A stretch of DNA of 64,000 bases from contig JAMWBK010000003.1 of the NCBI GenBank assembly GCA_029953675.1, positions 1,860,001 through 1,924,000 of the forward strand, given 5' to 3'. Position 1 is the first letter of the stretch; each line of letters opens with the position of its first letter. The notes under the pieces are model-generated. The model saw nothing but the letters and a program-made list of their open reading frames with translations. It ran no database searches and was not told the DNA's origin. Made by a program: the position numbers and the translations under genes. Source of the stretch: Rhodosorus marinus CCMP1338 (lineage: Eukaryota > Plantae > Rhodophyta). Shown here one piece after another: positions 12,114 through 42,396 of this stretch.

Positions 12114-13254
12114 CTCGCCGTGCTTTCCCACTATTCTACACCCATCTCACTCACTCTCCTCTTGCACCAACTCTTTACTCCTCACTTTCGAACATCTACA
12201 CAGTGCCACTCCCAATCCAGTACATTCACTCCTCTATTATATACACGCAAAAAAACCTCAAAACAGGATAATGTCAGCCCTTCAAGAATCCTATCGATCC
12301 ATTCATTCATTGATTCTTCCAGTAATTTTCGAGATCTATTCTTAACCTCTATCAGTAAGGAACAGTTCACAAAAAATTGCTCACGCTTCCTAAGAGTCTC
12401 ATTTCTTCCCCTCTCAAACCTAATTCGAAAACAAATTTTTAAGAAAACCTAAAAGCTTTCCCCACACTTGCTCTCCCCTCCCCCATCCTCCCTCCCTCTT
12501 CCCCCCACCCGCTCCCGCTAACCGTTTTCCGATGTCCAACCACCAACCACCCGCAAAAAGCTGACACCTTATGTGACATCCATCCAAATTCCTAAAAATA
12601 GAAACCTTCCTTTAGATCAACGATTAAAAGACAAACACATAAAATTAACGATACAACATACGAAAACTCCATGAATAATACCATATCCTTGAATTCATTT
12701 ATTCTTAATTAATTCAACCCTGACCGCTCTTCCGCTTTTTCTTTTGATGAAAACAATTCTAGCATATCCACTTTTTATTTTGTATTTTTTCAGTATTGTA
12801 ATTATGTTCTGGTGCAAATATTTTGGACATATGTGTTTAAATATTACTTAATTCCATATACGAGATCCAATGATAATCGGGATATTTTACCCCCTGACGC
12901 CCGAGATGGATATCATATAATTGGAATGTTTTTGAGAGTAAGTCCCTTATTCAATCAATTTGTATCAATTATAAACGAATAGAAATGGATAGATAGATTA
13001 AAATAGATTGAACTAAGTATTTTTGTCAGTTTATATATATTTGTTTGTAATTTTCTGGGTTTTTATATTATGAAATACAAATATATTTTGACAATGCGAA
13101 GATCTATTAATAGAAGATCTTGTGCTGATCGGAGGTGAATGCTTGTCCGTATATACTGGGCGGGGGGGGCCCCTGGGGGGAACCAGAATAGTCCCGAGTG
13201 GCAAAAACAGACTAGTGAACGCGGATAATATCATGCGCCTCGAACATCGAATAC

Positions 13255-13309
13255 GAATGGTTTAATCGGAGGCTGAAAAAAAAAACCCCGAGGGGAAAAA
13301 AAGACTAAG
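13255..13309. other. ~55-bp conserved non-coding motif, second copy at 31106-31163
   Basis: ggtttaat(c/t)ggagg(c/g)tgaaa...aaaacc(c/t)cga.ggggaaaaaa.gactaa. Confidence 0.75.
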
Positions 13310-13349
13310 CGCGGCGAAGTACTCGAACATCAAAGCGTCGTGTTTATTA

Positions 13350-13700
13350 CGTTAATAGTAAAAAAACCAAAACAAAAATTCGAACGGGTAAAAACGGCGA
13401 GGAGAGCAGATAGGGGCGCTCATGGAACACTTGGCGAAGCCAAAGGGAACCAATTTGACAAGACAAATGTGCATTTATCAGAGGCTAACCACCCTGAGAG
13501 CACTAAGCTACTGGAGACGCATACTGCGCGCGTCAAACAACATGCGGCGTTTATTCGCCATAAAACGAAGCTCAGAGCCGTGCACAGACTGGAAAGAGCA
13601 GCCTGGTTTCACGCGAGCAATAGGGGTCACCCAAACCATCCCGGAAACCCGAACGACTCAATCCATGAACTGTAGTGGCAACCACAGACAACGGCCCTAG
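13350..13700 (-). pseudogene. Degenerate member of the uncharacterised 'WLRxxF...LWR' repeat-protein family
   Basis: Minus-strand pieces read LSSLCTALSFVLWR and IGSLWLRQVFHERPYLLSS. Nucleotide similarity of 13375-13450 (rev) to 23225-23295. Confidence 0.65.
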
Positions 13701-14454
13701 AGAACGCTAATACAAATAGAAAATGTAAGGAGCCCCTTCAGCGTGGTAAGCCAGAACATATCATTTTACAAGGATACCAGGCGGTGGCCTAAAGCTGAAG
13801 CTCGAATCCCGCTGGGTTAGACAAAGTCCGCGCGTATTTCACTTTGTGACGTGCGTAGTGGCAGCAGCAGCCCCAAGGCGCCCTACCGCAGCCGGCGGAT
13901 AATGGCTAGCCTGGGGATTTGGGAACATCGCAGATGACTGTGGGGCACGTATTTTCAGTTGTGAACTACGCGGCCCCTGGGATTAAGTGCAAGGTAGTCG
14001 CTTGGTCCGACTTTGAGTGATAACTTCGACTTGAAAGCAGCTTTGAGACAGCTCATCACTCTCGAGTCGAGTGACTTTTTCCCCCTCGGCCGATTCGCGG
14101 TTAAGTGGAGCCGAACTCCCTGGATTAATTCACGCCTGCGTGGCCTGTTGGTTTCATCTATGCGGTACTTTGCCGGTAAAGGCCTTGTATAAGCATATGC
14201 AAGGATGGGGAAAGCGTGCACGTTGCGGATTCTCGCATTGTACTAAATCCTCCGGGACCGTTCATGACCCCCTACACCATAGCTTTTACAACTGCCCTTC
14301 CAAAGCTTTAACTACGGCCTCGCAACGCCAAATCAGATTTTAGGCTCGAATCAAACTTGGCAGAGGCGAATGATTCTTTACTCCAATAACCCTACAGGTG
14401 CACTCATGTTGCGAGGATCCAACGCAACCCTCTCTGGCCAGACCAAACTCTTCT

Positions 14455-22399: not shown

Positions 22400-23500
22400 A
22401 CCTTCTAGCCAAAGAAACGAACTCCGCAGACCTCTGCATGGAATGAGTGTCCACAAAGACTTGATGTTCACCAGCGAGGACTTGACTGCCTCCGCCTCTA
22501 TTTCATGACTCTCCCTCGGCCTTCCAATGCCTCTAGTGAAAAGAACGATGAACCCACTCCCTGCAAGATATTTAATCATCTGCAATCTTGGGAATGCTCC
22601 CAAGCCCGAGTCGAGCTCAAATAGCTCTTCTACTCATACCCTGTGGATCCCTTGTCCTCTGTTTCACCAGCTCCCCAGAAGTGCTTCCCCACCGGTTTCT
22701 AATCGCCAAAGCTGCCCTCACTGTTGTTCATGGTCTCAAGCGCTCCCCCAAAGTGCGATTCTGGAAATCAAAAACCCACCTATCCTCTGAAAACAGGTGC
22801 ATTTTCCCGTTGCCCACCAAAAACCTGCGAGAGTAATCAAAATTTCATTGCCCACACGCTAAGTGTTACACGGACCCACTGGAAACGCCTATTGCCCACA
22901 CTTATATATTGCGCCCACTTACTGCCCTCCTTTAAACCTCCTGTTTTCGCCGGTTTACCCACTTCTGGGTAGTAAACAGCCAAAAACCCGACGCACTTGG
23001 CACACACCCTAATAAGAACATATTTTTAGTGAACGGTCCCTGGTTTTGGCCTGAGCTGAGACGCGAGCAGAGTCTGCTGGGAAGGATGTTTCTTGTTGAG
23101 CTTGTGCTCTGCGTTCTGACCCAGATGCTTCTAGATAGAATATCAATCAACGAGCGCGAAATCCACGGCACTAGTTCATCGCCTGGTATCGCTGGTCATT
23201 GAATTTTTTGGGTTATGGATTCCGTTGGTTCTCCTTGGCTTCGGGAGTTGCTCCGTGAGCGCCCTGTCCGTCTCTCCTCGTTGTTTACCCGCTCAAGCTT
23301 CTTGCTGTGGCGTATGAGCACTGCTTTGACGCTGGAGGTGGGCGATCTTCGCCGCCATAGTCTTGTTGTCCCCTCCGGTTTTTTTCTTTCAGTCTCCAAT
23401 TAACCGACTCATTCAACTCCATGTGCGACGCCGTGTTTCAGAAGTGCAGCAAACTGCCGGTTTCGTGGACTTGGCTATATGTATAGAATTCCACTGAAGT
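22400..23500 (+). pseudogene. Degenerate member of the 'WLRxxF...LWR' repeat-protein family
   Basis: HRLVSLVIEFF, a frameshift, then MDSVGSPWLRELLRERPVRLSSLFTRSSFLLWRMST (ORF 23215-23403). A weaker unit GLDCLRLYFMTLP lies near 22480. 23400-23500 matches 35690-35790. Confidence 0.65.
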
Positions 23501-24456
23501 AAAAAAAAAGAATAGGTTTGCCGAAAGAATAGGTTTGCCGACAGTTTCCGTCGCGTTTCAACATTGTGAGCGCTGTGTGCTTAGACTGGAGGCAACTCTT
23601 CCTGAATGTCAGCGTCAGGTTCATCTTTCCCTCAAGCGACCAGAAAACATCCACCCGGTCTAATTCTACAGACTCCCGGGTGGCCGCAACTTACCAATAG
23701 TAAGGTTGGGCCCCAGGGGGGAGGGGCGAAGAGGGGGGGATATGTTTCGCAAATCCCCTCGCCGTGTAGAATATAAATATTTCCTTTACTAGGATATGGA
23801 ATTCCCTCGTCACTCCCGACCCCCTCACCTAGTGCGTGGAATCGACCAGACATTGGAAAACACGTCCAACATTAGGTTGGACCGGTTTTGATCTGGAATT
23901 CAATGATTGGCTAACATATGAATTCATAGGTATTAATTGGATAAATTGAGAATAGATTATTTTGTACAAAGCAATAATTGTGCATTAATTGGATAAGCTG
24001 AGAAAAGATTATTTTGTAGAAAGTAATATTTGTGAAGATAGTCTAAATTAATACGTATATTCAAGATGTATATACCAATTATGGGGACGTTCTGTTCCCA
24101 AGGAAACGTGAATGGTGGATCTAGTCGCTAGTCCTCTTCTATTGGTCATAGTTTTTGCAAACCGTTTGTTGTGTATTTCCATATATTTTCTTTTACGTCC
24201 TCCATCAGCTCAACGCACAGCTTTCCAATGTGTGAGTATGTAGGGGGAGGGAGAACTGATTCGGAAAACCAGAGCCCTCAGTCCGCTTTGGATGTAGCCT
24301 GCGAAACAGAATTTGATTAGGCACCAATTCCCAGTCCCGAACCATTGAAAACAAAATTCATTTTCATATTCCCCCGTATCAAGCCGGGGGATAGCGATCA
24401 GTAGCTACTCCCAACGCAACGTCCCAACAGCCCCCTTTTTCCCGAATTCCCCGTTT

Positions 24457-24894
24457 TTGAGTTGCGAAGAATCCTCCGCACTTGGGCTCAACCCTACCAA
24501 CAGGCGGCATCCCGCTGTATTGCAGACCTCCTGGCTTCGGACGCATCTGACAGAGCCTCAGAACATGTCGACCTCGCCGTCAATTGCCCAGTTTCAAGTA
24601 CTTATCTCCGATTTGCTGCCCCAGGGTGGGGTGGACGGGTTGCGGCAGCCGCTATTCTTCGCCCGTCTCCCCTGCGCTGAGGAAAATGCGCAAAGGTTTC
24701 AGCCTTTCCTTGTGGAAAGATTTGCTCATCTAGAAATGTCAAGCCTGGACTGGCTTCGTTTCTCTGCCCACCCCGCCCAGTATTTCGTCGTCCTACGCCG
24801 GTTCAGTGTGGCTTTATGGCGATATTCCACCAGCATGCTAGCCAAGCCTCGCTACCGCCACCTTGGCTTGCACACTTTCGTTCCTCGTTCCTAG
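24457..24894 (+). pseudogene. Open-frame fragment (145 aa) of the 'WLRxxF...LWR' repeat-protein family
   Basis: LDWLRFSAHPAQYFVVLRRFSVALWRYSTSMLAKPRYRHLGLH aligns with LVWLRKCFAELPMEYMELVRCFTVALWRYSSSILAEAGHWRLGLH (34385-34530, minus strand). Confidence 0.7.
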
Positions 24895-25349
24895 CTCGTA
24901 ATGCGCCCCGCGCAAGCGGAGGACCCAATTTTATATGGTACCCTCTTGGGAATAGTTTGCGCAGGTGATTGTCCTCACACCCCAGCTCCCGCCCCTCTAT
25001 CTACGGTGGTTGCTGAGCTTTTCTGAAAGCATTTTGCTCAGCTTATAGCGCTTTAACACCTCTTACACTTTTTTACACTTTCTTACACTTTTTTTACAGT
25101 CCTAGTTTTTTTATCTGGTACCCCTCCAGGTGGGAGCGTAGCTCTTAAGACTATATTAGTGAAACCACCGTTGTAGTCTTACCATTGTATTGCGTTGCCT
25201 ACAGGGCCAAATCAGACTTCAATCTCGAAGAAAACTTGCCAGTGGCGAATATGGTTTAAATCAAATAACTATACGGGTAAACTCATCTTGCGCAGATCCA
25301 CGCAACAAGGGAGGAAGTTGGCCACAGCGATCTATCCACAGACTCCTCC

Positions 25350-28300
25350 CTAACGACTCATGTACCGAAGGTGCTTAAACCCGAGGTAACCAACTATCCA
25401 TGAGAAACACGTGAATCCGACCAGAGCTGCTACCGAAATCCACTTGTCATACTCTGGCACTCCGTACATGTGCAAAAGTTGCTCTCCATTCGTAATTGGA
25501 CAGAACTGACATTCGCTATAGGTAGCGTTAACAGTCACTGTTTGGTATTCACCTGCCCGACGAAATAAAAGTCACATTCAGCGATCAGTTCCCACAAGCT
25601 ACTAGCTTTTGACCTTGAAAGGGTTCCAGCGGCCTATTCGTACTTATAGAGGGAATCGATTCACAATTTGGGAACGGATAGGTCGCGTTATCGTTTCCAG
25701 GAAAAGGGAAAGTATAGAACTCGTTCGGTTCACAGACGAACTCCGTTCCAGTGAAGACGGCTTTCATGATGCCAGACAGGTAGTACCCGATCGGATTAAT
25801 CCAGTAGAGCCAGATATAATACCAAGGGATTGAGGTTGGTGGTATCAAGAAACCAGCGAAAAGGTTGAGCAGGCTATTCGATAAGGGGACCAGCATCAGC
25901 CCAATCTGTTCGGTAGGGCTAATTGCGCCAAACATAGAGCCGGTGGCTATGGCCCATAAAGCATAGATCGATCCAATGACGAGGAAGTATCCGAATGCAG
26001 ATGCTTTGCAGCCAAACGAGAACCACAAGAAGAAAAGTTTAGATCGTTGTCGAAGAAGGCGTCGTAACGAGTTTGCATAGATTGCGTCTCACTTACCTTG
26101 AAAGCCGATCAAGAAGAAGAACAAAACGGCGAAGATACAGTTGATTATAAGCGTGAACGGTGCGTCAGCAATCAGCAGAGGGAGGTAGTACGCTAGGGCT
26201 GAGTAAGCACCTGCGGCACTTTCTCGATAGAAAGTGATCCTATCCCCGATGACGTTTCCGACAGAGCTGCCAATGTTCATCAGGGAAGCCATGCCAGACA
26301 GGAACGCCGCTGCAATGAGGGTGAGGTATCCAGCTTGACTGTTCGGTACCTGAAAGAACGAGAGGCCGAGGAGCATGGCTTGGAAGACCGCAGTAATGAA
26401 GCGCGTGAAGTTATATTCCGGGGCCCTCCAGTAGATGGTTAAAAACCGCTTCAGGTTGGCGACGAACTGCACTCGAAAGCTTGTTGAGAACATATGATCA
26501 AACTTGATCCGGGGCGCCTCGTCCGGCACTATCGCAGGTTTGCCACTTTCCGTCTGTTCTAGCCTCCCCATGAGTTCTTTGCTCTCAGGACTAAGCAACC
26601 AGATCTTGTGCCAGTCCCTCTGCTCCTCCTACAACCAGATGAGCAAATACCAATAAAACTAGGTGAGCACTGCGCATCGTCAGCAACATCTGAATAGCTT
26701 CTCTCCCTACCCTCGCTGTCGTCCCAGCACCAATTTGGTCGAGCATATAGTCCGCCGGGTTCAACTTGGGATCAATTGGATCTCCTCCGTTCTTCTCAAA
26801 GTACGTAATCATTTGCGAAGCGTTTTCCCCCAGATCCCCAAAGTAAGCCACTTTGCCACCATTCTGCAGTAGCATTAGACTGTCAAAGCAGGAGAACACC
26901 TCCTGCGATGGTTGATGAATGGTACACAAAACCGCAACGCCGGTATCGGAGACCCTCCTCATAGCCTTTACCACCTGTGTCAAAGACAACGGCAATCGCC
27001 GGTGCGATGTCAGGGCCAGATGCCGAGTTCGTAAACGTGATTACGACGATCTTCGCTCACCTTCAACGCCCCCCTGGAATCCAATCCCGAAGTTGGCTCG
27101 TCCAGGAACAGTATGGATGGACGGACTACGAGCTCCACAGCGATCGTGAGGCGCTTTCGCTGCTCAGAGGATAGGCCAATTGCAGCCCCGGGAATACCGA
27201 CTATCTCATGTTGGATCTCCCGCAGTTCCAGTACGTCTATGGTTTTCTCGATCAGTTCCTCTCTCTCCTCGTCCCTAGTCTCCTCCGGCAGCCTCAGCCG
27301 CGCAGAGAATCCGATCGCCTCCCGAACTGTCGTCTTCGACATGTGAATGTCCATCTGCTCCACATACCTTTGCAGAAAGAAAGACACGAGCAACCATTTC
27401 GGAACATGGTGGTACGGGGTCGTGCGTCAGCGACAAGCACGCCGTCATTTCGAAACGAGGAACGAAACGAGCTTCTGCTCACTCTCTTACCCCGAAACTC
27501 TTCCGAACAGGGAATCCTGAGGATATCCGTTCACTAGGACTTCGCCAGACATCGTGCCCTTGGTCTTACGCCGTGCAAGGACGTCCATGAGCGTCGTTTT
27601 GCCGGCTCCTGAAGCTCCCATAAGCGCACACAGCCTTCCTGGCAGCGCGTATCCACACACCTGGTGCAGAAGTTCTTTCCTATTATTTCTGCCAATCGGA
27701 ACCGAATATGTCACGTCCTTCCACGTAAAATGGGCCTCCCGAATGCCTACTCGGGTTTCGTCCTCTGCCAAACTAACGTCGATCGCTTCGGCACCCAAGT
27801 CTGTGGGTTTTGCTTTTTGTGATAAGAGGGGCTTTCCGCGGTACCGCGTTCCTCTTGCCAGAAGCACTATCGAGAGCAGCATGGCGAGCGACAGAACCCA
27901 CAAAATCACAAGGGAATACGTGGCCCAGGGTCTATTTCAAAAAAAAAAGCATTTGGCGATCGAACGAGAGTCACAAGCAAGCCGTCAGCAGCTGTTCATC
28001 CGTTTCCCATCACTTTCTATGCAACGCTTACGCTCCAACAGGGTATAAAAATCGATCCCAAATGTACTCGTCTCCGGTCGATATAGTACATATCTTGTAG
28101 GCGTCAGGGATCAACGGGTTCCAGGGGAGCAACTCATCTTCCGTACATACAAAGGTTAGGCCCGCGAACTCATTATAGGCCAATCCACGGAATGCCCACT
28201 GAACCGGTGAAATCCAGCCAATCCAGGAGAGCCAGGGCTGGGCATCCGGGAGCGCGAAGAAGTAGCCGCTGAAAATCATAAATACAACGTTGGTAACACT

Positions 28301-30476
28301 GACCGAGATGATGGCTACAACTGGGTTTGGGCAGGCAACAGAGAACAGTCGCACCAACAATTCCATGGTGAACTGGAACGTTACAATCATGAAATAGAAA
28401 TACCCGAAGCGTATGAAGCTAGAAACGAACGAACAAGCGTTGATTCTTTCAGCTCAGGACCAACATGACGCGCTTCCAGAGTTTGAACACCTCACCTCTC
28501 GTTCATGTTGAAACCAACAAGCACGTAGAGAACAATCGAAAACAGCAACGAGACGAGCACGTTGAGAGCCAGAGCATCAAAAATTCCCGCGAGCTGGAAA
28601 GGAGCAGCGTGGTAAAAGTGGGCCGCCCTTTGCTTCAGGAAGATCGGGTTCCCTGCAAATTTATTCGTTACTCCCTGCGCGGCAGCTACGCAGCACAACC
28701 GAGATCAAAGAGGATTAGCTTGCGGCTTACGCTGTTATTAGATTGGCCGTGAGATAGGACTTACACAAAACAAAGGCAACAACGGCCAGAAACAGTACGC
28801 CGGCCCTTTCATACGCTCCACGCTGAGTAAGTGGAAGGTCGAAAAATACGGTTCCGCCGACCAGTGCAATGAGCAACTTGGTGACAAATTCAGTAATAAC
28901 CGCGCTCTTTGACCAGGTCAGCCTCATGGAACGCTTCAGCAGGATTCCAAACTGTCTAGTCCTTGTCTGCAAACACTCGCGCCCAAAAAACTTCCTCGCA
29001 ATTTCATCTACTTTAGAGTGCTTTCCCGTAGTACCGTGGAGGCCCTCGGCGATCTTCTCGCGAATGTCTGTATAAAGCTCACTGTTTCTAAAAGCCTCCT
29101 CAAATTCGTCCACGGTATTCAGTTCCTTGCCTTCGAAGTTCTTCATGTTAACTGACTCAGAAATATTTGGGTCCGACACGGTCAGCAAAAAGTCTGCCAT
29201 CGATCTCACGGGAGGTCTCTCAAACCCGATTTCTCCAAAGTACCCTTCAACCTTCTCTCGCGGACCGTAGTAGATGCATTTTCCGCTGTCAAGAACACAA
29301 ACCTGTTTCCAAGCGCACCATTCCAGTCAGCAAGAGTGTGGGTCACAAGGGGGACAGGAGCGCGCCAGAACGTGCTGTTGGGGGCCAGGGCAACTAACCT
29401 TGTCGAACTGTTCAAATGTCTCATTTCCAGGCTGCTGTAGGGCCATGAAAACGGTCATATCAAACGCCTTGGCCACCCGTCGGACACCCCTCACGATGTC
29501 AAGGGTTGTGGCCGCATCCAGCCCTTTTGAAATATTATCGAAGAACACGAGTGAGCCCATGCTTCCGCACAGAATCTCTGCGATGGTCACACGCTTTCGC
29601 TCTCCTCCAGAAACTCCTCGCAATGCTGCGTCGCCAACTGCAGTATCGAGGGTATGGTTGATTCCTAAGAAACTGGTGATTAGCTCCACACGGTTTCTCC
29701 GAATGACTTTCGCAAAGGGTAGAAAGTCAGGAATACCGCATTTCGCGGCGAACTCCAGCGTCTCCCGCACAGTCATCACCGGGTAGTGTGCGTCCTCCTG
29801 ACGAACTCTTAGCATGGAGTGTGCGTAGAGCCGTCGGTTGCTTTCTTCCCAGATATCATCACCATTAATAAGCACTTCGCCCTCCACGGATTCGTACAAG
29901 TTCGTAACTCCGGAGAGGAGGTTCAACATTGTCGTCGTTCCTGCGCCAGGTGGCGCCTGAATGAGGACCATTTCATTCGGTTCGAGGTAACCCGACACAC
30001 CGGAAAGAATGCTTTTCGACCTTTTTTCGTCTTTCGTGCAACTTACAGTCTTCCCCGCCATCAAGAACGGTGCTATCAGCCGCTTGCCAACTGTACTGTG
30101 CCCGAATTTCTCGGTAAAAGGGACTTCAGCCCCAATCTATACCAAAAGAAAGGGTTCCGGGAACCGTGTCTCAGATAATATCCTAGAAAAAGTAGCGGAT
30201 AGGCCTCCGCAACATATGAGAAAGATGGGTTACCTCGTTCCAAGTTACACGGTATCCACCCATTTCATGCCCAGTGAACATGGTCAGGATATCGTAGAAC
30301 ATCTGGTGAGACTTCGCAGTGTCAAACTCTGGCTTGCACGGATCATACATCGGTTCCTTGTACCACGAACCGAAATGCTCTTCTACTGCCTCCCTTCGTT
30401 CACGAAGCAGCGCAAAGCTCTTGCCCTCAGCAAAGCGGGCAATTGAGTCGCACCAACCGCCAGCAAGGCAGTCCAT
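25350..30476 (-). CDS. Full-size PDR-type ABCG transporter, copy 3; ~10 introns
   Basis: Exon-for-exon paralog of copy 2, with long near-identical stretches, from MDCLAGG (30476) to GFKHLRYMSR* (25350). Confidence 0.93.
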
Positions 30477-30597
30477 GACAAAAAAAAACCCAACGACCCC
30501 TCCTTCAATCCCTCTGCTAGCCGTTCCTGCTCAAGAAGAAGAAAGATATTCCTCTCTTCCAATTTCGCGTGTCTTAAATCCTCTACACATTCTTCCC

Positions 30598-30662
30598 TAG
30601 TCCCCCTCCCTAATCCCTCCCTAATCCCTCCCTAATCCCTCCTCAAACCCTCCTTAATCCCT
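30598..30662. repeat. (CCCTAATCCCT)n minisatellite; G-quadruplex-like on the minus strand, upstream of ABC copy 3
   Basis: ccctccctaatccctccctaatccctccctaatccctcc. The minus strand reads (GGGATTAGGGA)n. Confidence 0.85.
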
Positions 30663-33199
30663 CTGTCCCACCCAACCATCATTGTCCCTTCCCCAGCGCA
30701 TGGCGCACATATAAATCGCCGCTATATCTCTCAACATCATCCTGCCGCAGCAAAATCCAAGCAGCCGTAAAATTCTCCAACGTCTTCTGCCATAAACTCT
30801 TCCAACAACTATCCATCCAATTACCCCCCCCCCCACCTCGCGCCCTAAAAAAGAAAGAACTGTCAGCAAACGACATGCCCAGAGTAGCTTCCCAGGCACG
30901 TAAGCATAAAAAGGACCCCTGGGAAACAAACGATACAGAGGGAGGATTACCCAAAACGATATTCAACCGAAGAAATTGTAAACTTTTCTCGTCCCGTTTT
31001 CTCGCACGGGATAAAAGCCGGATGGATCCGCTCGGTCAGACACAATCAACGAACTTGGCACGCGCTAATTTCTTCTCCGTTTATTTCCATATAATATTAA
31101 TGAATGAATTGGTTTAATTGGAGGGTGAAAGAAAAAAACCTCGAAGGGGAAAAAATGACTAAAGGGGTCCATTTCCTCTGTCCAAAATATTCGTGTCAGG
31201 TGGCACCGAACAGTATAGGATATTGAGAAATTTCAGTGCTCTCACTGGTGGCTGGATACCAATATATACTAATAACTTGGAAGGTTCATAAAAGATTGAC
31301 ACACCATCGGTACATTTGTACGACGCGCACTGGCGAAGGAGCAGAAGAAGGTCAGCTTGCTTTCCTTGGCTGCTGTAGAGTGTGTTTGGAGGTAGAAAGG
31401 CAAAGCCTGAGCAACCCGGATACTAACCGCGCCAGAAGGTAAGGGGAGAGGTCGTGCGAGTTCCTCCGCCGTTAGAAACTATGCAGTCGATAGTCAGCTA
31501 GGGGTTGACCGCGTAGGAGGCAACCAGGTTGAAGGACGTGGTAGCTGAAGGCAAGTCAGCGAAACTCACTCTCATGCATGCAGATGAGGAACAGTCAGCC
31601 CATCCAGACAAAACATTAGTGCAATATGAGACATAGTCACACACAGTTAGCAACTCCATAGGGGTGGCGGAAAACACGTCAGCAATGCCCACCGCTCCAA
31701 TCCATAAATAAATTCCTTCAATCTATGAATCTGAGGAACGGTCTTACACAACCGACCGGGTAATCATGGTCACAATAGTGCCATATGAGAGCCCGGAGAA
31801 GCCACAATGAGGCGCGATCATCCATGGCCAATCCACCACCGCCATCCCCTTAGACAAGCGAACTGATGATACGCTGATCAAAAAACAAAAGGGGACTTTG
31901 GAGTCGCCAGCGAATTCGTAAATAAAACAATATTTTGACGAGTTCCATTGTAAAGATTTTTTTTGTGCATAACAGGAAAAAACAAGACGATGTGAGCGTT
32001 TAGATCATGAAAAACTGGTTTTTTTGAAGTGATCAAATGCACCGTACACCCCGCCGTCTAGTTGACTTGAAACTCCATTTCCCACCCCCGGGAACTAAAT
32101 CTATAATCATGTCCTAAAGCAAGGAAAAAACAAGAAGATTAGAGCGATCGGTCTAGCGACGAAGGGGGGGGGGGAGCCGTTAAGACCTCTTTTTGGAGTC
32201 AGTAAAGCGTGCGGATTACCACAATCCCCCTATCATCAGAAACCTCAAAAAGCAGTCCCACTGGCTAAAGTGACATCGAATCCAAAACAATCCCTTGAAA
32301 TGGTTTGTAGGGAGCGAGCCGAGCCCGGGGAGGTTAATTTGCCTCTAGGGTAAATAATGAGTGCGGCGAGTTACGCCAGAAGGACGGGAGGGACGGACGC
32401 CGTTAGGAAGCGATGGTTTACTCAACCCCCCGTTAACTTAAATCTCCTGCTGCAAACAACACGTAGTTTGTATCTGACAAGGTTAAGTTCCCATCTGATC
32501 CAAATTGTCTTCAATTATTTCTACTTTTTCCAAAAGATGGGTTAGGTTTTATTTTTTTAAAATGATATGGTACGGACAATCCCCTCCTCATCTGATTAGA
32601 ACAGTACTATTTTCGTTTTTCAATAAGACCCGATACACGAAATTTGAAAAACAAATGAATTTATCTTTATAATTCATTCAAACGAGAAATTGCTTCCTTT
32701 TTTTGGTACTGTTTTCCGGTAAGGGGCCAGCCTACTGAAATCGATTTCCGAAATAAAAACCATGCTTCCGTCCTACTAGAAAATTTGTGCGGTAGGTATC
32801 AAAGACCCCCGAATAAATTATATAATTATAATATAATCTCACCTGCTAGATGCCGGTGAAGAACGTCCCCTGTTGTAGTAGTCGTCTTGCTCTAAGTTCG
32901 ATTATACTTCAAAATCTACTATATATAGACTAGATATATGATAACCCTGAAGCGCGATTCTGTTCACCTCAAGTTTTGTTTTTCCTTTTCTAGGAAAGCA
33001 AATGGACCGACTTCTTTCAAGGTAAATTGTAGATAAGATTTTCATTTGTTTTTAAAATAAGAAGCTAGCAGTCTGCCCCTCTCCAAATGCGTTTTTGGTT
33101 GGCCCAGATCATACTGTCCTGATCTAAAATTTTCGTTTTTCTGTTTTTTCTGTTCACTTCCTTTCAGACATTGATAAAATGCATGCTCACCTTTATTTT

Positions 33200-35200
33200 C
33201 CTCTATTTTTCTGCATAAAATCTATTTGTGTAGGCATCAAAATATATTTTCTTAGTGCACGAGATGTTCTCAAAAGTTTAGTAATTTTCTGTGACGTTGT
33301 AGTTGCACCCACATGCAGATAGGCTTTTTTAAAATATTTAGAAACGCTGTTAGCTGGTAGTAGACTGGTGGATGGGAACTGTCTTGACATGATTGTCCTG
33401 AAGTCAGCAAAAGCACGTTCTAAAGGTTGAGACTTTAATGGTGTATGGAAGCAACGAATGCTCGTTCAGAAATTGCAGAAAAGGCCTGAGGGGAAAACAA
33501 ACTACTGTTTAGGCAAAGATGGCAGCATTCATTTGCTACGACAGATCCTCAAGCGATAATGGGCGCTAAGAAGCGTTCAGAGAGCTCATTGTACGCTCTG
33601 CCCGCTTCGCAAAGCCAAGGGTAACTAGTGGAATCCATGCAGTCAAAACATATTTTGAGCAGGGGTACTAAGCGCTCGGACAAAACCTCGTGCTCGACTA
33701 CATAAGAAAAAAGTGTTCCACTTCTTTGCAACGTCGCACATCGACCGAGGTTGCTCCAAGGCACACCCCGCAGCAGGCAGTTACCAGCCTGCCGCGGGTA
33801 TGGGAGCAGAGCGTAGCAACACATCGAAAAGAACGCTCCGTGCAGGTCACAGACTGCCTCTTCATTAAGCACTGGGATGTCGGCCGACAACCAACTGCAT
33901 TATGTCCGCATACCTAAGTAAAAGTCTCACTGCGATCTCAAAAGCAGTCGCAAAGCCAGCCCGAATCCTAATACCTCGATCGCTTCATAGTCGGAAGTGA
34001 CTTTGCCCTGGCCCCCTCTTGAGGCTTCTCGCGTTTCTATTTTTAGCACCAAGAAATACTCTGCCAGGCACCCTTGAACCTGACTTGCCGTTGTTCTGCA
34101 TGAGCGTCGATAAAAGGAGACTAAGTGCTCTATATGAGTATAGGAGACCGTGTCTGCATATCTGTAACTAAAAGTCTCATCGTGATCGTAAAAGCAGTCG
34201 CATAACCAGGTCGAATCCAGATTCTGCTTTGGCTTTATTGTCCGAGGTGGCCTTCCCGGGTTTCTCTGGACGACTCTCACTTATTCTATTTTTAGCACCC
34301 AGAAATACAGTGCTGAGTAGACTGGTTTTTACGAGCATAGCCTGAAGCACTACGCAAGGCGTGGACTGTAACTAAGAACTAGGGAGAGAAACATGCAAAC
34401 CCAAGCGCCAATGGCCCGCCTCGGCAAGAATGCTGCTAGAATATCGCCACAGGGCGACAGTGAAACAGCGTACGAGTTCCATGTATTCCATGGGAAGCTC
34501 AGCAAAACATTTCCGCAACCACACCAAACCCGACTTATCCACGAGTAGACTTGACCTGAGTTGTTGTTCAGGTGCTTGAGCGCGACAAGGAGACTACGTT
34601 CTCTAGATGATTGGTATGTAGGGGGTTAGGACTACCACAAAAACACAGATAAAAAGATCTCGTGGTGCAGCCACTGGTTCAATGCGACGCCTAAACGAGT
34701 CTCAGTTCGCTGGGGCGATGACTCATCCAACAACTTCGGGACTCTGCGCTGTCTCATCGGTTTCTACCCCTGATATTCGAGGGCTTTGGCCTTTTTAGTC
34801 AGTGTTGCTAGCTTCATGGGGGTTTTCGCAAATATGCCCCCGGCCGTCTTGACAGCCTCCTCACGGAGCTGTGTCTGACTCTCTGGGGCTCGAACGCCTG
34901 GTTGTTGGGCATCATCATTGTCCCTTTCCGCCCCGCAGGTTAGACACGCTCTGAAGAAATTGATCGATAAAAATAACTCCATCTCTGCGGTCCAAAGTGG
35001 CCCTCCCCGGTTTCTCCCATGGTTTCTTTAATATTCTATTTTTAGTACCTGGAAAGAATACACTTTGAACCTGAGTAGTTGTTGTTCGGTGCATGTCCAT
35101 GAGCGCGATGAGGACACTAAGTCCTCTAGAGGATTTGCATAGGGGTTAAGGCACTACCAGTTAACAAACAATACAAAAACAACTGTTACTGATTTGTTGA
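33200..35200 (-). pseudogene. Tandem array of degenerate ~250-bp coding units of the 'WLRxxF...LWR' family
   Basis: Repeated nucleotide blocks at ~33920/34170, ~34035/34285/35035 and ~34075/34550/35065. Peptides include RLVPLLKICFDCMDSTSYPWLCE, LDSTWLCDCF, DSGWLCDCF, DKSGLVWLRKCF and VLKIE. Confidence 0.7.
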
Positions 35201-35259: not shown

Positions 35260-35800
35260 AAAATTGGGTTATCCAAAGTTCTCAATCGCAACAAGCTGGC
35301 AAGGCATTGGAAGCTGGACCAGCAGCTTCGGCTTGAACTTTGGTGAGTTTCACCGAGATCCCACCCTATCGATCTCCGATCGATGCCGGATTGGTAGTCA
35401 TCGTCATCAGCTATTGTTGGCAGTCCATGTTTGTGGGTTCAGAGTTTGCTTCATATAGCCATTTTGCGCCGCTCCACGCTGATGGTTCACAGTACAGCAT
35501 GAAACTTGGAAACATCAATACTCCAAAAATCCGTTGGCTCTGTTCTCAGTGACCATAGCAAGTAACAACGTAGATAGCTATTGATGTGTCCTCGTTCTGG
35601 CGAGCGGAGAGGCACGCAGGATCCGGTTGAACTTCTGCTCCATGTTGCCGTCTTCCGCAGATATTTTTAGATTGAGTATCAATCAAGCAAGCGCGGACTC
35701 CACATGCATCGCCCTCTTTCGGATATGAAGCTCTAGAAGCAAAGTGCGGTGACATGGCCTTGGCTATTTATGTAGAATTCCACTGAAGCAAAAACGAAAA
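35260..35800 (+). repeat. Probable further degenerate copy of the same family
   Basis: 35690-35790 matches 23400-23500 (cttggctat.t.tagaattccactgaag). The peptide GLVVIVISYCWQSMFVGS resembles RLVSLVI..F..MDSVGS. Confidence 0.45.
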
Positions 35801-35944
35801 CGCTTGCGGGGTTGAACTTCTGGCGGCATGTTCAGCATTATCATCATCACCATCATCCATAGTTTCAGAGTCTATCCACCCTGAGGGGCGTAAAGGGAGA
35901 CACTGATGACGCTCGCCCAACAATATAAAGGGAAGCCGTTAGAG

Positions 35945-36215
35945 GAAAGATCATCATCACCATTGATAAGCACCTCGCCTGCGGATTCTATACAGGTTCT
36001 CAGTTCCTGAGAGCAAATTCAAAATTTTCGTAGCTCCCGCACCAGGCGAGGCCTGAATGAGGGCTCTCTCTCTCATTCGGTTCAATTTAACCCGATACAC
36101 TGGAAAGAACGCATTTCGACTTTTTTCGTCGCTCGTGCATGTCACACTCTCCCTCGTCATTAAGAACGATGCTATCAGCTGCACAGGAACTGTACTGTGT
36201 ATGAATTTCTAGGTA
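35945..36215 (-). pseudogene. Decayed fragment of a fourth PDR/ABCG copy (start of NBD1 exon)
   Basis: Nucleotide match to ~29860-30120. Frameshifted translations give VTCTSDEK / KSKCVLSSVSG / LIQASPGAGATKILNLLSG. Confidence 0.85.
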
Positions 36216-37210
36216 AACGTCTCGTCGCGGTCGCGAAAACAGTCGCGAAGTCAGGTCGAATCCCAAGACTTCGATAGCAAGTGAAACAAATCGGTGTGAC
36301 ACAGCCGTTTGCAGGAAGCTATGCTAGTCAGGGCCTGCTCCTGGTACACAGAGTTGCACTGTTTTTGAGCAGAAGGATAAAAGTCCTAATGAGAATGTGA
36401 AGACCTGTATATTGATTCAACTATGCTTCACACTCCTCCTATGATCGTCCCCCGCTCTTCCGGTTGCTCATATCACTTTGTTCCACGAGAGACCTCCTCA
36501 AAAAAATGCAGCCCTGAGATCTTTGGACTCAGCAAAACAGGAAAGCTTTCTTGCGGAAGTTATGAAACATCTTGAGCGCATAGGTGAGGCCTTGGGTTTG
36601 TTGATGGTAGGAATCAATCGCTCCAACCGCTCAATCGCTCTCTCGGTTAATGCCCATTCGGCTGTCAATGCGGTGGCACGCGATTCGTCTCCAAACGGTA
36701 TTTTTCCCTCAGAATCGAGTTTTCTAACGCGTGTTGAGGGGGCTCTTCGATCGAGTCTGGAAAATATGTCTCTCACAGTTGAATCCAACTCCAACTGTTT
36801 TCCCCTTTACTTGCATTTAAGTTGAACTATCTCCTGAGCTAAATAAAAGCCATCTATTATCCCAAGATCAGCCGTCGACGACGTACGTTGACCTCGCGTT
36901 CCCAGTCCTCAGGCTAGCCCTTATCTGGCGGCTGGTGGGGGAGCGCCGGGATATGAATCAGCAACTATTCGACGTCGCGAAGGAAGTGAAATACGCTGGG
37001 GCTTCGTACTCCCCTGGAATTCGAGCTTCGGCTTTAGCTCATCGTCTGGTGCCCTTCGTAATTCACGTTTTGACTTTATGGATTCCGTTGGATTCCGTTG
37101 GCTTCGCGAATTGTTCCGCGAACGCCTCGACCGGCTCACCTCGTTGTCCACCAGTTGGGAGTTCCCTGTTTTGGCGCATGAAAGCTGGGTTGATATTGGA
37201 GGCCGCGTGA
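36215..37210. pseudogene. Further degenerate copies of the family (minus strand 36215-36310, plus strand 36935-37210)
   Basis: Minus: HRFVSLAIEVLG, frameshift, DST*LRDCFRDRDETF. Plus: HRLVPFVIHVL, frameshift, MDSVGFRWLRELFRERLDRLTSL. Confidence 0.7.
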
Positions 37211-37219
37211 TCTTCGGCT

Positions 37220-37520
37220 TCAGTAGTGCGGACAATCCTCTCACCGCACTACATGATATCTGGTCGGATTCTCGTGGCAATGAACATTAAGAGACCAACC
37301 AATCCTCTGTATGGGGCCTCCTCAGGAACAGTCGCTGGTTGGAAAGTCAACGTGCACGATACATGATATCAGGTCGGCATCTCGTGGCAATGAACATCAG
37401 ACAACCAATCAATCCTCTGTATCGAGCCTCCTCGGGAAAAGTCGCTGTTCGTCTAATGTTCATTGCCGCGAGAACCCGACCTGATTTGTTTGCTTGCGGT
37501 GAGAGGATTGTCCGCACACC
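37220..37520. mobile_element. Ty1/copia reverse-transcriptase fragment present three times (two tandem minus-strand copies, one inverted plus-strand copy)
   Basis: Minus: APYRGLVGLLMFIATRIRPDIM and ARYRGLIGCLMFIATRCRPDIM. Plus: LMFIAARTRPDL. These match the copia RT motif PYRxLxGxLMYLxxxTRPDI. Confidence 0.8.
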
Positions 37521-37863: not shown

Positions 37864-37904
37864 TGCATTGCGTACATCTTCCTTCTTGCCCTCTTGGATT
37901 TTGA

Positions 37905-38075
37905 AATAGGGGACACCACTCTATCACCCCTCGACACTATGCTGCATACCACCGGCCTCGAGGAAATTGCTATCCTCCAATTAGCCCTTCAGCCAGCTCC
38001 ACTCCTCCAACAACAAACACCGACGTATCCCTCAGGGACACGTCCTTCACGCAGAAGCCGCCAACGGCACTATGG
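37905..38075. repeat. Dispersed repeat, second copy at ~41225-41385
   Basis: ga.accactctatca...tatgctg.ataccacc...ccaattag.ccttcagcca...caaacacc...acac.tccttcac.cagaag.cg.caacggc.ctatg is shared by both. Confidence 0.85.
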
Positions 38076-38659
38076 TTAGTATCCTGTGACCCAAAGAAGT
38101 GAGTGACTAGGCGGTATGCTCATTGACCTTCGTGCGAGAGGGTGAATGAGCAGTGGAGATCTCAAAACCGACATACTCCGAAGATCTTGTTCTTTCAACT
38201 GACCTCTGGACTTTCACCGAAAGAAAGACTTCGTGTGGGATCTTTTGCGTGAGGAGCATCACCCCGGACACAGCGGCAGCTCGGACCCTCATTCTTTTTG
38301 AGTGTTTTGACGATCATGAGAGCAGTCTTTCCTCTGCAGGATTGTCGGACACGATGGTTAGAGATGATTCCGATCTCCCTGTCAATTGAGCATCGATAGC
38401 TGCTTCATAGTTGCATCGACTGCTCCCATCCGCGAGCCCATCCTCTTTTAAGAATCATATCCTCATCTTCGTGAAAGCAACGTTGCTTCATCTCCATGGA
38501 GAAATCTCATGTTCTCGTCTTCGTTCTTAGGGGCTTGATGCTGATGATGAAACATCTGTTGTCCCGCAAGTGGCGGATTTGGTGATCACTGACCTGGCTC
38601 CTCGCAGGAGTGAGTATCTGGACTTGTGTATTCATGTCCTCGGGCTGCGCGATATCTTC

Positions 38660-39170
38660 CCACGTCTGCCAACGTCGCAGTATTGCCGCCGGTTCAAACG
38701 ACAACTGAACGAAGTGCAGTAAGCTGAGGGAATGACTCATCCAACCATCCGGACTCGGCGCTGTCCCATCCGTTTGTACTGCTGATCATCGAGGGCTTAA
38801 ATGTTTTTAGACAGTGTCGCTTCTCGCTGGCTTCGTCGTGTTTTCCGCAATACCCCCGTCGTCTTGACCTCACGGAGTTGTCTCTGACTCTCTGGCGTTC
38901 GAACGCTGCTTTATTGTTGGACGTGCGTCATCAGCGTCTTCCTTTCCACGCTCCTCAGGGTAGATAGGCTCCGGATCAACTGATTGACGTAGAGAGGAAA
39001 ACCTCGATTCATTTAATTCATTCAAGGTCGGGAATAGCAGGGTTTCTAAAACAGAGATTCCATGACACCTGTCCATTGGATATCCGGACAGATAATGTCC
39101 ACTCTTGTTCAAAAGTAAGAAACATTCTAGAATATCTAATTCAACATTAAGAAACAAATACAGCTAAATA
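38660..39170 (-). repeat. Degenerate copy related to 34640-34930 (same family)
   Basis: Nucleotide similarity to 34680-34930 (gatgactcatccaac, ctcacggag.tgt.tctgactctctgg). Peptide LLLNKSG vs LLVDKSG. Confidence 0.6.
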
Positions 39171-40499
39171 TGTTCAAAGAAAACCTTTATTGGAGGTTTC
39201 GCCAATACCGAAAACCGGTACGAAGCACTGAATTTTAGTGGAAAACCCGAAAATCCCGCGGTTGGTAGAATGCATATGGGCCAGTACTTGGCGACTCTCA
39301 TCTGGTCCCATAAATCCCCATACTAGACTATCTTGACTGATGTATTCATAAAATATAGTACACTATCCCTAAATTTAATGTTTTACTCATATTCATCCTT
39401 CCTTTTTTAGCTCTAAGCCTAAAGTGCTTACCGGCAGCGTAATTCAAGGGAGCCATTAGCTTCCGGATTCTAATTGTTGTCTAGGACTAACAGTTCCGTG
39501 GTTTCTCTCCGCAACCCCCGCCGTTTTGCTGATGAAGCACCACATGTATGGTATATCAGATATATAATATACGATATTCACAATTTCATTAAATTTATCA
39601 ACGATTTTTATGTTCAAATCTAGTTTCTAATTGGTGGAATGAATTTGCCACCAAACGTTTAGCATTTTTCTTCTCATTTGAATGTAGAAGTAGATAAGTT
39701 TTACAAATATACGATAGTTTTGAATCACGAGGTCGATAGGTTGACTCTAGTAGCTGAGTGAGGCAGCCTTGATCGCATCCAACAGAGTTCTCGTCGGTGG
39801 TAGAAGTTTCGTTCTCGTTGTCAGTGAAGAATTTAATGTTCTCCTACATTCTCAATCGCAGCACCGTCGAAAGACTTTGAAAACTGGGCCCATAGCCTGG
39901 CTTGAATTCTTGAGTTTCGCTGGGACTCCCCACCTTGTCGAAATCCGATCGACGCTGGATTGTTGCTCGGTTATGGTGAGTTGGTTGAGAACAGCTTCAG
40001 ATAACCATCTTGAGCCTCTCCCTCTGGTAGGTATAATCTTCAGTACAATATAGAACTGGAAAGACATCGCCTTTCCAAAAGCCCGTTGACTGTTATACAA
40101 ACAAGCTTCTTGTGGGTGACCATAGTAACAACGTATTGTTATGGGTAGGTCCTCGAGGAAGAGCTCCAGCAGCGAGCTGCCGTCGCATGGCGTTGGTATT
40201 TATTGGACTACATGGAGGTAAATAAAAAAAAATAAATAAAAACTCTATGCACTTGTAGTCAATCAAAACTTTATGCGGCACTTTCCGCAGGACTGGTTAA
40301 GCGCGGTCATGCGCCGGAGTCGTCTTCCTGAAAATCGGAGCCAGTTCGATCTAACCCGATGCGTTCAACGCTATCAAGTCCTTCTAATTCTACGGCCGCT
40401 CGTACACGCAGCTGCGCGAACGTACAGAATGTCGACCCCCCAAAGTTCCGAGGTTGATGCAACTCGGCAGAAGGACCGGGATCTCGGACAAGCAGATTC

Positions 40500-41200
40500 G
40501 TTGTTACCAGCTTCCAGGCTTAAGTCAATGCTTTGAAAACTATGCTAGGCAGCAGCCGTGAACGTGTTCTTACAAAGTTCTCTATTGGAGCCATAAAGAG
40601 TGCAGAGGGGATCTATCGTTGCATTACGAAACCCCTAATGGGTTCTGTGAAACCCCGTAGCCTTCATTCCGCAGCTACCTACCGCACTGCAATGCAAACA
40701 ATATCGATGCGCTCTAGACAAACCCGGTGGCAAAGGTCACCAACAACACTCTTGGTGCGCTCGAAACAAACCCAAACCGAAAATGTTGGGGGATCGGCTC
40801 GATCATTCTGGATCGCGGTTGAACCGGCGGTGCGTTGCGCTGCGTTGCGTGCCATTGGACCCGGTTGAACCCTGATTAAGAAGCCGAAGGCTTGGCAAGC
40901 CCTTCCCATCAAAAACATATGCATCCGCCATCTGTTATTAATTTGTCGCTCTTCAGAATCTCCATGTCTGCAGTTGTAGCATGAGCCTCGAACTTAACCA
41001 AGTCACATAGCTCCAGCAGTTTCCCAAAGGTATCCCCGACATTTTCCAACAGTCCAACACAACTTGGCTGTTTGCATGCGATTCAATACAACCGAAGTTT
41101 CTCCTGTCGTCAGCAAATTAAACGCGGAGTGGACGCTCCCTGGCTCGTGCTTGGAATCCTAGTAAAGCTGGGGCAAAACCCCCTCTTCCTTCTTCCAGCC
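40500..41200 (-). mobile_element. Possible hAT-type transposase remnant (stops and frameshifts)
   Basis: IPSALFMAPIENFVRTRSRLLPSIVFKAL resembles the hAT C-terminal dimerisation motif (IP.SS..ER.FS...RSRL.P..V.AL). Weak, by eye. Confidence 0.3.
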
Positions 41201-41479
41201 GTGGATTCTGAAACAGGGGCGCAAGGATACCACTCTATCATCGTTCGATATTATGCTGAATACCACCGTCCTAGAAGAAAATTCTGTCTTCCAATTAGTC
41301 CTTCAGCCAACTACACCCCTCCAAAAACAAACACCAATGAATCCGGACACATCCTTCACACAGAAGTCGGCAACGGCGCTATGAAAACCTGGTGACGACC
41401 TTACCGCCCTTACAACTCAACAAGTTTTGACCTTTACAAGCTTGCGCTACCCACCACTGGCGAACCCACTGCAAAGATT

Positions 41480-41905
41480 GACTAGATCTTTTCGAAGCCA
41501 AGGGAACGACCTGCTCATGGATCTCACATCTCACAGATTTTTTCATCCCACCGATGGTCGATGCACATCGTTTTGTGTGTACATTCCTTTCCAAGGCAAA
41601 AGGAGGGTATGGCGACATATAGTACTTGTTGTTCTTCAGATCAACCCAAATGGATGCTGATGCTCTCCAACATAGGGAATGCTACTGATCGCCAATAATT
41701 CTATCGGTTTCAAAGCCAGGGAACGAACTGCTCACGGATCTCACACCTCACAGATTTTTTCATCACACCGATGGTCGAGCATATCGGGTTGTGTGTACAT
41801 TCCTTTTCCAGGCAGAGGCGGATAGGGCGACCAGCTAGTACTTGTTGTTGTTCAGATCAACTCGAATGGATGCTCTGTAACATAGGGAAGGCTACGGATC
41901 GCCAA
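41480..41905. repeat. Diverged tandem duplication, ~225-bp unit x2
   Basis: aagcc..gggaacga.ctgctca.ggatctcaca.ctcacagattttttcatc...acatagggaa.gctac at ~41485 and ~41712. Confidence 0.9.
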
Positions 41906-42396
41906 AAGCTCTACCCCCGCATCCCACCAAATGACCCCTTCAAAATAACTCAAAAATCAATGCCAGTTCTAGAGAGCAGATATTTCACCGGATGAGATGC
42001 GGAACTTGGTTTCTTAGGACAGGTCAGAACCCTCTTTACGATTGGGATGGTTAGTCATGATAGATTCTATCTACTTCAGTCCTACGGGGATGTATTAACT
42101 ATGAACCTTGCCCATAACCCAAAGAGCTACTAGCAATGAAGGAACATCAACCAAAGACTGTTTTTCCCAACCCGCCTGATCCAAAAAGTTTGATTTTATT
42201 TTTGTTATATTAGAACTCATGCGGATATTTTTCGTATCGATAAGGAATCAGTGGGTGAGAGTGGAATTCGTTTGGTAGGGTTGTTGAGGAAAGGGCTGGT
42301 TAGGGGTGGGAGGGGGGCGGGGAATGTTGAAGGAAGGTGGATAGGGTTTTTGGAGAAGGACAGACATTTAAACTGGTACTTAAAATCAAGGAAAGC

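Follow-up and report, generated by a model that had tools for sequence, protein, structure and literature searches.

The ABC-transporter cluster and its intergenic DNA

We analysed a 64,000-nucleotide stretch of the Rhodosorus marinus CCMP1338 genome on contig JAMWBK010000003.1 (the window, to which all positions refer). Its genes, which include a lipase_3, an alpha/beta hydrolase, an MA3 gene and a serpin, mark it as eukaryotic, and three full-size ABCG/PDR-type transporter genes lie on its minus strand. In each ABC gene, exon 1 ends in ..ITWND and is followed by an intron of ~100 bp and by an exon 2 that starts with ..VPFTEKVGHDTVG. An original prediction, made from the letters of the window, had noticed that the DNA between these genes encodes the same peptide again and again, on both strands, and every locus that it listed does hold a real copy.

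On its two strands, the intergenic DNA of the cluster carries ~12 copies of a single unit, and with them four derived fragments (E1-E4). This count comes from DNA HMMs (nhmmer) that were trained solely on copies from other R. marinus contigs (external copies) and then run on the window, where they match twelve stretches with E-values from 1.5e-63 to 6e-4. The copies belong to three DNA subfamilies: A (at 13.3-13.9, 23.2, 33.5-33.8 and 36.9-37.2 kb), B (34.7-35.0 and 38.5-39.0 kb) and C (24.5-24.9 and 34.3-34.6 kb). In the following list, nhmmer matches are to the HMM of the fragment's own type unless stated otherwise, and 'LINE' denotes the probable assignment that is argued for below.

7766 to ~12100, minus: ABC1, an intact 1341-aa ORF with two ABC_tran and two ABC2_membrane domains
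13250..13508, minus: A-type LINE 3′ fragment, unit plus 3′UTR, 5′-truncated (tblastn; nhmmer 13258-13453, E 1e-22; 3′ end aligned with external copies)
13520..13952, minus: A-type LINE fragment, ORF residues ~206-305, head-to-tail with and upstream of the preceding copy (tblastn; nhmmer 13751-13924, E 9e-24, and 13474-13575, E 6e-4; LB 13470-13590, E 1e-6)
14327-19758, minus: ABC2
23150..23415, plus: A-type LINE 3′ fragment, example u1 of the original prediction (MDSVGSPWLRELL...), ~80% identical to copies on contig JAMWBK010000013, with its 3′ end ...CCGACTCATTCA at 23415 (tblastn; blastn; nhmmer 23165-23415, E 2.5e-59)
24498..24945, plus: C-type LINE 3′ fragment that extends, with a frameshift, into the endonuclease core (RCIADLLASD..HVDLAV) (tblastn; hmmsearch; nhmmer 24507-24898, E 4e-53)
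25206-30644, minus: ABC3, 82% identical to ABC2, with a duplication period of 10,885 bp
31101..31167, minus: A-type 3′UTR stub of ~65 bp (nhmmer E 3e-4 and, for 31101-31167, 2e-6; blastn)
33477..33810, minus: A-type LINE 3′ fragment (MDSTSYPWLCEAG...) (tblastn; nhmmer 33522-33810, E 5e-14)
33839..34074, minus: E1, in which a diverged LINE piece (..AIEVLGFG / SGWLCDCF) is fused to ~70 bp from the beginning of ABC exon 2 (repeat search D10, D12; alignment; translation)
34151..34322, minus: E2, a local duplicate of E1 (73%), directly abutting the 3′ end of the C-type copy
34323..34619, minus: C-type LINE 3′ fragment, example u3 of the original prediction (VDKSGLVWLRKCF...), 80-81% identical to external copies, with its 3′ end ...GCTCGTAAAAACCA at 34323 (tblastn; hmmsearch E 1e-22; nhmmer 34346-34562, E 1e-51)
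34655..34970, plus: B-type LINE 3′ fragment, in the opposite orientation to its neighbours (tblastn; nhmmer 34660-34968, E 7e-27; 3′ end alignment)
34969..35184, minus: E4, an incomplete E-type fragment that meets the B copy tail-to-tail (E HMM E 1e-20; C HMM 35058-35139, E 1e-3)
35852..35927, minus: B-type 3′-end stub of ~75 bp (nhmmer E 7e-11 and, for 35852-35923, 1e-8; blastn)
35948..36219, minus: ABC transporter pseudogene fragment that covers ~270 bp from the start of exon 2 and shares 76% identity with ABC2 and ABC3, with LINE pieces on either side (blastn; repeat search D11, D13, D15; translation)
36196..36330, minus: E3, a LINE piece (AVSHRFVSLAIEVLGFD / ST*LRDCFRDRDE) directly 5′ of the ABC fragment (translation; C-terminal HMM)
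36866..37226, plus: A-type LINE fragment, ORF residues ~194-306, with a foldback/110-bp repeat in place of the 3′UTR (tblastn; nhmmer 36870-37218, E 1.5e-63)
38453..38999, plus: B-type LINE 3′ fragment, the longest copy in the window, spanning residues ~16-183 of the C-terminal ORF (tblastn; hmmsearch; nhmmer 38560-38987, E 3e-48)

The gapless peptide alignment of u1 and u3, for which 15 of 46 identities had been reported, gave exactly that number on recounting. Its Smith-Waterman score of 70 is far above that of shuffled sequences (24 ± 4.6), and none of 2000 shuffles attains it. Comparison of the spacers with themselves also revealed a network of DNA segments on both strands that are 64-80% identical, and this network includes all of the originally listed loci. 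The low nucleotide similarity that had been claimed for the units is a property of comparisons between subfamilies (43% for A versus C, in register), whereas identity within a subfamily is 64-80%. The A and B DNA HMMs find each other; C is joined to A and B at the protein level only.

The units at 33.2-35.2 kb had been described as tandem, with a spacing of ~250 bp. The minus-strand copies and fragments in this region begin at about 35184, 34619, 34322, 34074 and 33810, which corresponds to spacings of ~565, 297, 248 and 264 bp, and the first gap is taken up by a B copy in inverted orientation (34655-34970, plus strand). The region is no regular tandem array, and TRF detects none in it, but a pile of fragments spaced roughly 250-300 bp apart, with one copy inverted.

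The unit is the C-terminal end of a longer ORF

The unit had been thought to be a ~70-85-aa repeat of a protein of its own. Instead, it comprises the last ~55-60 codons of a long ORF and ~60-75 nt of 3′UTR, ~250 bp in total. It sets in just past the last endonuclease strand (..PLIIExFG), follows the pattern xDSxGxxWLRxxFxExPxxLxxLxxxLSxxLWRxNAxxLxEAR, and is succeeded by a stop codon and a 3′UTR without poly(A).

When 1.84 billion representative proteins were searched exhaustively with an HMM of the unit, 16 matches were obtained, with E-values down to 5e-17. Thirteen of these are true relatives, in most of which the unit is located at or near the C-terminal end. All seven relatives with a named source are from R. 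marinus, and consist of MMETSP transcripts and the NCBI 'hypothetical proteins' NDN08_000222-224, whose gene models are pieces of these elements inside a nest. A word-index protein search with the unit alignment yielded no match, and Pfam matched neither ten unit ORFs nor the complete C-terminal ORFs. The Rfam and tRNA scans of the window were likewise empty, and we rejected the idea of the unit as a SINE or non-coding RNA on these grounds.

In two AlphaFold2 runs the unit was modelled as two confident helices (pLDDT 84-92), while overall pLDDT was 58 and 66 and the endonuclease core was unstructured or all-helical at ~40-65. The two-helix tail may pack onto the endonuclease.

Reverse transcriptase and endonuclease domains

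Upstream of the unit, R. marinus copies outside the window encode a reverse transcriptase (RT). In one locus (L002), an RVT_1 domain (E 3e-9) precedes a LALPLRLGG region and then an ORF that ends in the unit, all three lying on one strand. Another R. marinus contig carries a nest of these elements (L001), in which the A- and B-type RT ORFs match RVT_1 with E-values of 2e-11 and 3e-12, respectively; the best PDB matches of the A-type RT ORF are LINE-1 ORF2p (4e-10) and R2 (5e-9). After each RT ORF of this nest comes a C-terminal ORF with, in order, CCHC, RRH, E, (A)D, D, K..KY, ..PLIIECFG, the unit FMDSVGSRWLRELFRERPDRLQSLFTRLSFLLWRMNAALMLEARVLRRA and a stop codon. The CCHC motif, which reads CPLCx11Hx4C in the A type and CALCx11Hx4C in the B type and is also present in the relative P0024, aligns with the CCHC of R2.

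A scan of metagenomes with the RT recovered distant RT-bearing ORFs (23-41% identity) and no full-length R. marinus copy. The C-termini of these environmental relatives match the R. marinus C-terminal profile with E-values of 5e-5 to 1e-2, and show the canonical RHN / PD / D / K..KY / ExFG pattern with a comparable tail behind it. Within ~490-690 residues N-terminal to their RT, no Exo_endo_phos domain was found at E<=0.01. The R. marinus loci that we have seen contain neither an N-terminal ZF/Myb region nor a full-length copy.

A search of the PDB with one C-terminal ORF, or with a profile of R. marinus sequences only, gave no meaningful match, and R2 surfaced only once the RT-linked environmental relatives had joined the profile. 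This combined profile matches the CCHC/RLE (restriction-like endonuclease) region of the solved R2 proteins 9nl2 (8e-7), 9nl3 (6e-5), 9dou (8e-5) and 8gh6 (5e-3). In the R2 element of Bombyx mori (R2Bm), the RLE motifs are CCHC, RH in helix 1, PD, D/E, K..KY in helix 2, and RG.W after strand 4 (PMC4838377). Our alignment places RRH, E, ADL (PD in the environmental relatives), VDL, KKIKY/VKERRY and ExFG in this domain, with RG.W merely approximated by FG....W. The profile and the motifs together support the prediction of a PD-(D/E)xK restriction-like endonuclease. Since the alignments to 9nl3 and 9dou extend into the start of the unit, we regard the unit as a tail after the last endonuclease strand.

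The original prediction had found no known family that the unit resembles. That novelty is removed by the RVT_1 domain upstream in the same ORF and by the match of the C-terminal domain to the CCHC/RLE region of R2.

The window copies as probable 5′-truncated insertions

Within each subfamily, the copies in the window and elsewhere have one common 3′ end without poly(A) (A, ..CAGCCTCCGATTAAACCATTCA; B, ..TAGCCTCTGAATAAACGGATC; C, ..GGCTATGCTAATAAAACCA), whereas their 5′ ends vary, and the shared sequence continues past the stop codon into the 3′UTR. The window fragments are 65-545 bp long and all are anchored at the 3′ end of their subfamily, and tblastn detected no RT fragment in the window. 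The common 3′ ends, the variable 5′ ends and the absence of RT from the window are a hallmark of 5′-truncated LINE insertions. Sequences that flank the 3′ ends are not conserved. The original prediction had proposed that the flanks of copies be checked for terminal repeats and target-site duplications; a repeat search of the window found no LTRs or TIRs at the copies, and neither a target-site duplication nor a conserved target is visible at the younger copies. Head-to-tail or adjacent copies are found at 13250-13952 and 34151-34619, as well as in L001 and L002.

We therefore consider it very probable that the units are the 3′ ends of an R. marinus family of non-LTR (LINE-type) retrotransposons with an R2-like architecture. 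The original prediction was essentially right in offering, as one possibility, the ORF of an unrecognised mobile element, except that the ORF is no 'cargo' but the element's own RT-endonuclease. This ORF is predicted to encode, in order, the RT, a linker with LP.RLGG, the CCHC knuckle, the PD-(D/E)xK RLE and the two-helix C-terminal tail. By analogy with the mechanism established for R2 and other LINEs, reverse transcription would begin at the 3′ end of the element RNA and would often halt early; most insertions would therefore be 5′-truncated and retain only the end of the ORF and the 3′UTR.

An element of some other class (LTR/copia, DIRS or Penelope) could be imagined in place of an RLE-type LINE, since the relative P0019 couples a copia-type RVT_2 segment to unit-bearing sequence. 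However, P0019 is chimeric, and its RVT_2 segment ends abruptly at the onset of the LINE C-terminal sequence. In both L001 and L002, the RT contiguous with the unit belongs to RVT_1 and has its nearest solved relatives in LINE-1 and R2; the CCHC/RLE of R2 is also what the C-terminal domain matches. As the copies moreover lack LTRs and TIRs, we judge membership in another class to be highly improbable.

Selection on the coding sequence, followed by decay

We counted the differences between copies at codon positions 1/2/3. Intact external copies of different subfamilies have a third-position excess, with 54/34/91 differences for A-B (p 8e-7), 72/50/92 for A-C and 63/50/94 for B-C, and a comparison of C with a diverged external C copy gives 12/12/38. 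Close external copies have flat distributions (6/6/6 and 5/6/10). Pairs of window copies are flat or not significant (3/6/11, 9/8/8 and 27/23/29), and the excess of u1/u3 similarity in frame 0 comes mostly from two W-W matches and from the lack of stops. The proposal that the units stem from coding sequence, whose lineages diverged under protein-level selection, is thus borne out by the external copies, and the proposed later decay by the window copies, which have no frame preference. In the LINE reading, A, B and C diverged while selection for a working protein still acted on their active master copies, and each inserted copy decayed neutrally afterwards. The conserved W/L/R/P/G positions are due to the selection on master elements, and the stops and frameshifts that interrupt the window copies to the neutral decay.

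These patterns also bear on the first interpretation originally offered, in which the units would belong to a fast-evolving, birth-and-death host family of small helical or helical-repeat proteins, perhaps immune-like, encoded between the ABC genes. The two confidently modelled helices would fit such a family, as would the open frames of 66-181 codons that some window copies retain and the transcriptome sequences related to the unit (P0002, P0004 and P0024). However, open frames of 100-136 codons are present in every frame of this intergenic DNA, and the window copies lack the third-position excess. Furthermore, in every longer relative the unit ends an RT/endonuclease ORF or a piece of one, no repeat exists within the protein, the sequence shared among copies runs on past the stop codon, and NDN08_000222-224 are element fragments in a nest. 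We give this explanation almost no weight, and regard the window copies as 5′-truncated, decayed remains of transposons instead of a new family of host proteins.

ABC-transporter sequence in the E-type fragments

E1-E4, all on the minus strand, are local duplicates of one another (62-73% identity). E1-E3 each consist of a diverged LINE piece that passes straight into the start of ABC exon 2; E4 has retained the 5′ part of the unit only. These fragments can be tied weakly to the LINE family: a frameshift-corrected E3 peptide, the correction being post hoc, matches the C-terminal HMM with an E-value of 0.002, and the external DNA HMMs miss the E-type fragments (E 0.67). ABC-derived pieces occur in the spacers only at 35948-36219 and 33839-33908. 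At 35852-36330, the order is a LINE piece, 272 bp of ABC exon 2 and a B-type 3′ stub. Such a mosaic could have arisen by DNA-level rearrangement of a fourth, lost ABC copy, or by template switching during reverse transcription.

We also considered, and rejected, the ABC exon 1/intron 1/exon 2 junction or the beginning of the membrane domain as the source of the units; only the E-type fragments carry ABC sequence. That the units are relics of former transporter copies (5′ exon, intron and membrane-domain start) left by unequal crossing-over can be dismissed as exceedingly unlikely: although a true exon-2 fragment at 35948-36219 and the bits at 33839-33908 are fused to E-type units, and u1 has weak blastp matches to ABC1 residues 383-412 (E 0.2-0.8), hhalign finds no significant profile-profile similarity between the units and ABC1 (probability 0.3%), units are present on contigs without ABC genes, and they are continuous with an RT/RLE ORF. 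A denser nest of the same fragments is found in L001, on a contig that has no ABC gene. The tie between the units and the ABC cluster is incidental.

Relation to known LINEs

Like R2 (for example, R2Bm and the solved proteins listed above), the R. marinus family has a single ORF with RT, CCHC and a C-terminal PD-(D/E)xK RLE, lacks a poly(A) tail and leaves 5′-truncated copies. The motifs RH, E, (P)D, D and K..KY and a G behind strand 4 likewise follow one another in both (PMC4838377). On the other hand, R2 sits in 28S rDNA, whereas the R. marinus copies occupy ordinary spacers of protein-coding genes (the window is free of rRNA according to Rfam), so that the family falls outside the R2 clade in the strict sense, which is defined by site-specific insertion into 28S rRNA genes. 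Further differences are an A-D in the R. marinus copies where R2 has P-D, a sequence identity so low that the profile alone reaches R2 (E 8e-7), and a post-endonuclease tail (WLR...LWR) that is conserved within the R. marinus family.

LINE-1 ORF2p provides the best solved match of the RT domain (E 4e-10), but LINE-1 has an N-terminal AP-type endonuclease, a poly(A) tail and no C-terminal RLE. LINE-1 inserts itself through target-primed reverse transcription and is often truncated at the 5′ end. Other clades of LINEs that encode an RLE are NeSL/Utopia, CRE, R4, HERO and Dualen. All of these share with the R. marinus family an RT followed by CCHC and RLE, and Dualen also has an APE domain, which the R. 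marinus family may conceivably possess as well. RLE-encoding LINE clades are described as early-branching and as often targeting repeats (PMC4640811).

The kind of element is therefore known, and the family itself seems undescribed. The paper on the R. marinus assembly GCA_029953675.1 gives no account of nuclear transposons (PMC10250338), and neither that paper nor our full-text literature searches turned up a description of the family. It is conceivable, though we think it rather unlikely, that the family and its distant environmental relatives constitute a so far undescribed RLE-type LINE clade of red algae and other protists, marked by the two-helix tail and by head-to-tail insertion at or next to older 3′ ends. 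If so, the chimeras at 35852-36330 could record template switching of the RT onto host mRNA, that is, the capture of gene fragments.

For the annotation of R. marinus, the 'uncharacterised repeat-protein family' is a false lead, and the 'hypothetical proteins' NDN08_000222-224 are likewise fragments of elements. The three subfamily 3′ ends and the C-terminal profile provide a handle for repeat masking of the genome. The function of the ABC transporters is unaffected, the spacers of their cluster having merely absorbed insertions and gene fragments. For the biology of the organism, the finding means that an R2-like, RLE-encoding LINE family is, very probably, abundant and transcribed in a stylonematophycean red alga.

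ABC-transporter genes and other genes of the window

Three full-size ABCG/PDR-type transporter genes (ABC1, ABC2 and ABC3) lie on the minus strand within positions 7766-30644 of the window. ABC2 and ABC3 are repeated with a period of 10,885 bp and are 82% identical, and their proteins share ~55-63% identity with that of ABC1, whose ORF of 1341 aa is intact. The reading of ABC2 and ABC3 is spread over several frames, which could reflect short introns or decay. Each of the three genes has a conserved upstream exon (..FGSWYEDP...GGYSITWND), which is closed by a GTAAGT donor and followed by a ~100-bp intron. Because this exon and intron precede it, the ABC1 start in the bacterial-style ORF list is too late.

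14327-19758, minus strand: ABC2, ABCG/PDR-type transporter, tandem duplicate with ABC3
25206-30644, minus strand: ABC3, ABCG/PDR-type transporter, tandem duplicate with ABC2
11790-12100, 19235-19560 and 30120-30450, minus strand: conserved upstream ABC exons

Elsewhere in the window, a serpin gene (53314-54578, plus strand) is split: Pfam Serpin positions 2-133 lie in one ORF and positions 139-318 in a second, and a short intron at ~53860-53950 presumably separates the two. Two diverged paralogous segments (2438-3046 and 6246-6845, plus strand; 59% nucleotide identity) were also observed, the second falling within a lipase_3 ORF (6238-7236), as was a hexanucleotide repeat, (TCGAGG)x20, at 50395-50518 within ORF 50186-50776.

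Duplications and a foldback-like element in the spacers

The window has further local spacer duplications, of 63-83% identity. They are not of LINE origin, and neither L001 nor L002, two other R. marinus loci with RT-containing LINE copies, contains a match to them. These duplications suggest that the spacer DNA has been segmentally duplicated repeatedly. In the A-type LINE copy at 36866-37226, the 3′UTR is replaced by a foldback-like element, whose 64-nt inverted arms are 84% complementary and whose 110-bp unit is present in 1.8 copies; L001 and L002 contain no match to this element either.

21578-21834 and 23734-23968: local spacer duplication
35268-35539 and 39838-40091: local spacer duplication
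37877-38074 and 41184-41383: local spacer duplication
41490-41913: local spacer duplication
37226-37517: foldback-like element, inverted arms and repeated unit

LINE nests at other loci

P0019, a protein of 235 aa from a JGI contig that is matched by the unit profile, is a chimeric gene model, in which a copia-type RVT_2 segment (E 1e-15) is followed directly by C-type LINE C-terminal sequence. Ty1/copia elements are therefore also present in the R. marinus genome, where they nest with LINEs.

In L001 (JAMWBK010000013.1:822265-843642) and L002, fragments of the A, B and C subfamilies are densely nested, with ~30 HMM matches in 21 kb. L001 also contains a long perfect tandem repeat (19160-19977), one strand of which encodes (AEPAAFVTG)n, with long ORFs in several frames. 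Many LINE fragments of the nest are in head-to-tail order, one B-type 3′ end adjoins a (TGA)n microsatellite, and in some copies the last ~85-145 bp of the LINE are tandemly duplicated:

L001 ~380-500: tandemly duplicated LINE end
L002 3368-3594 and 3623-3765: tandemly duplicated LINE end

This pattern may hint that copies inserted beside 3′ ends already present, or that template jumping took place.
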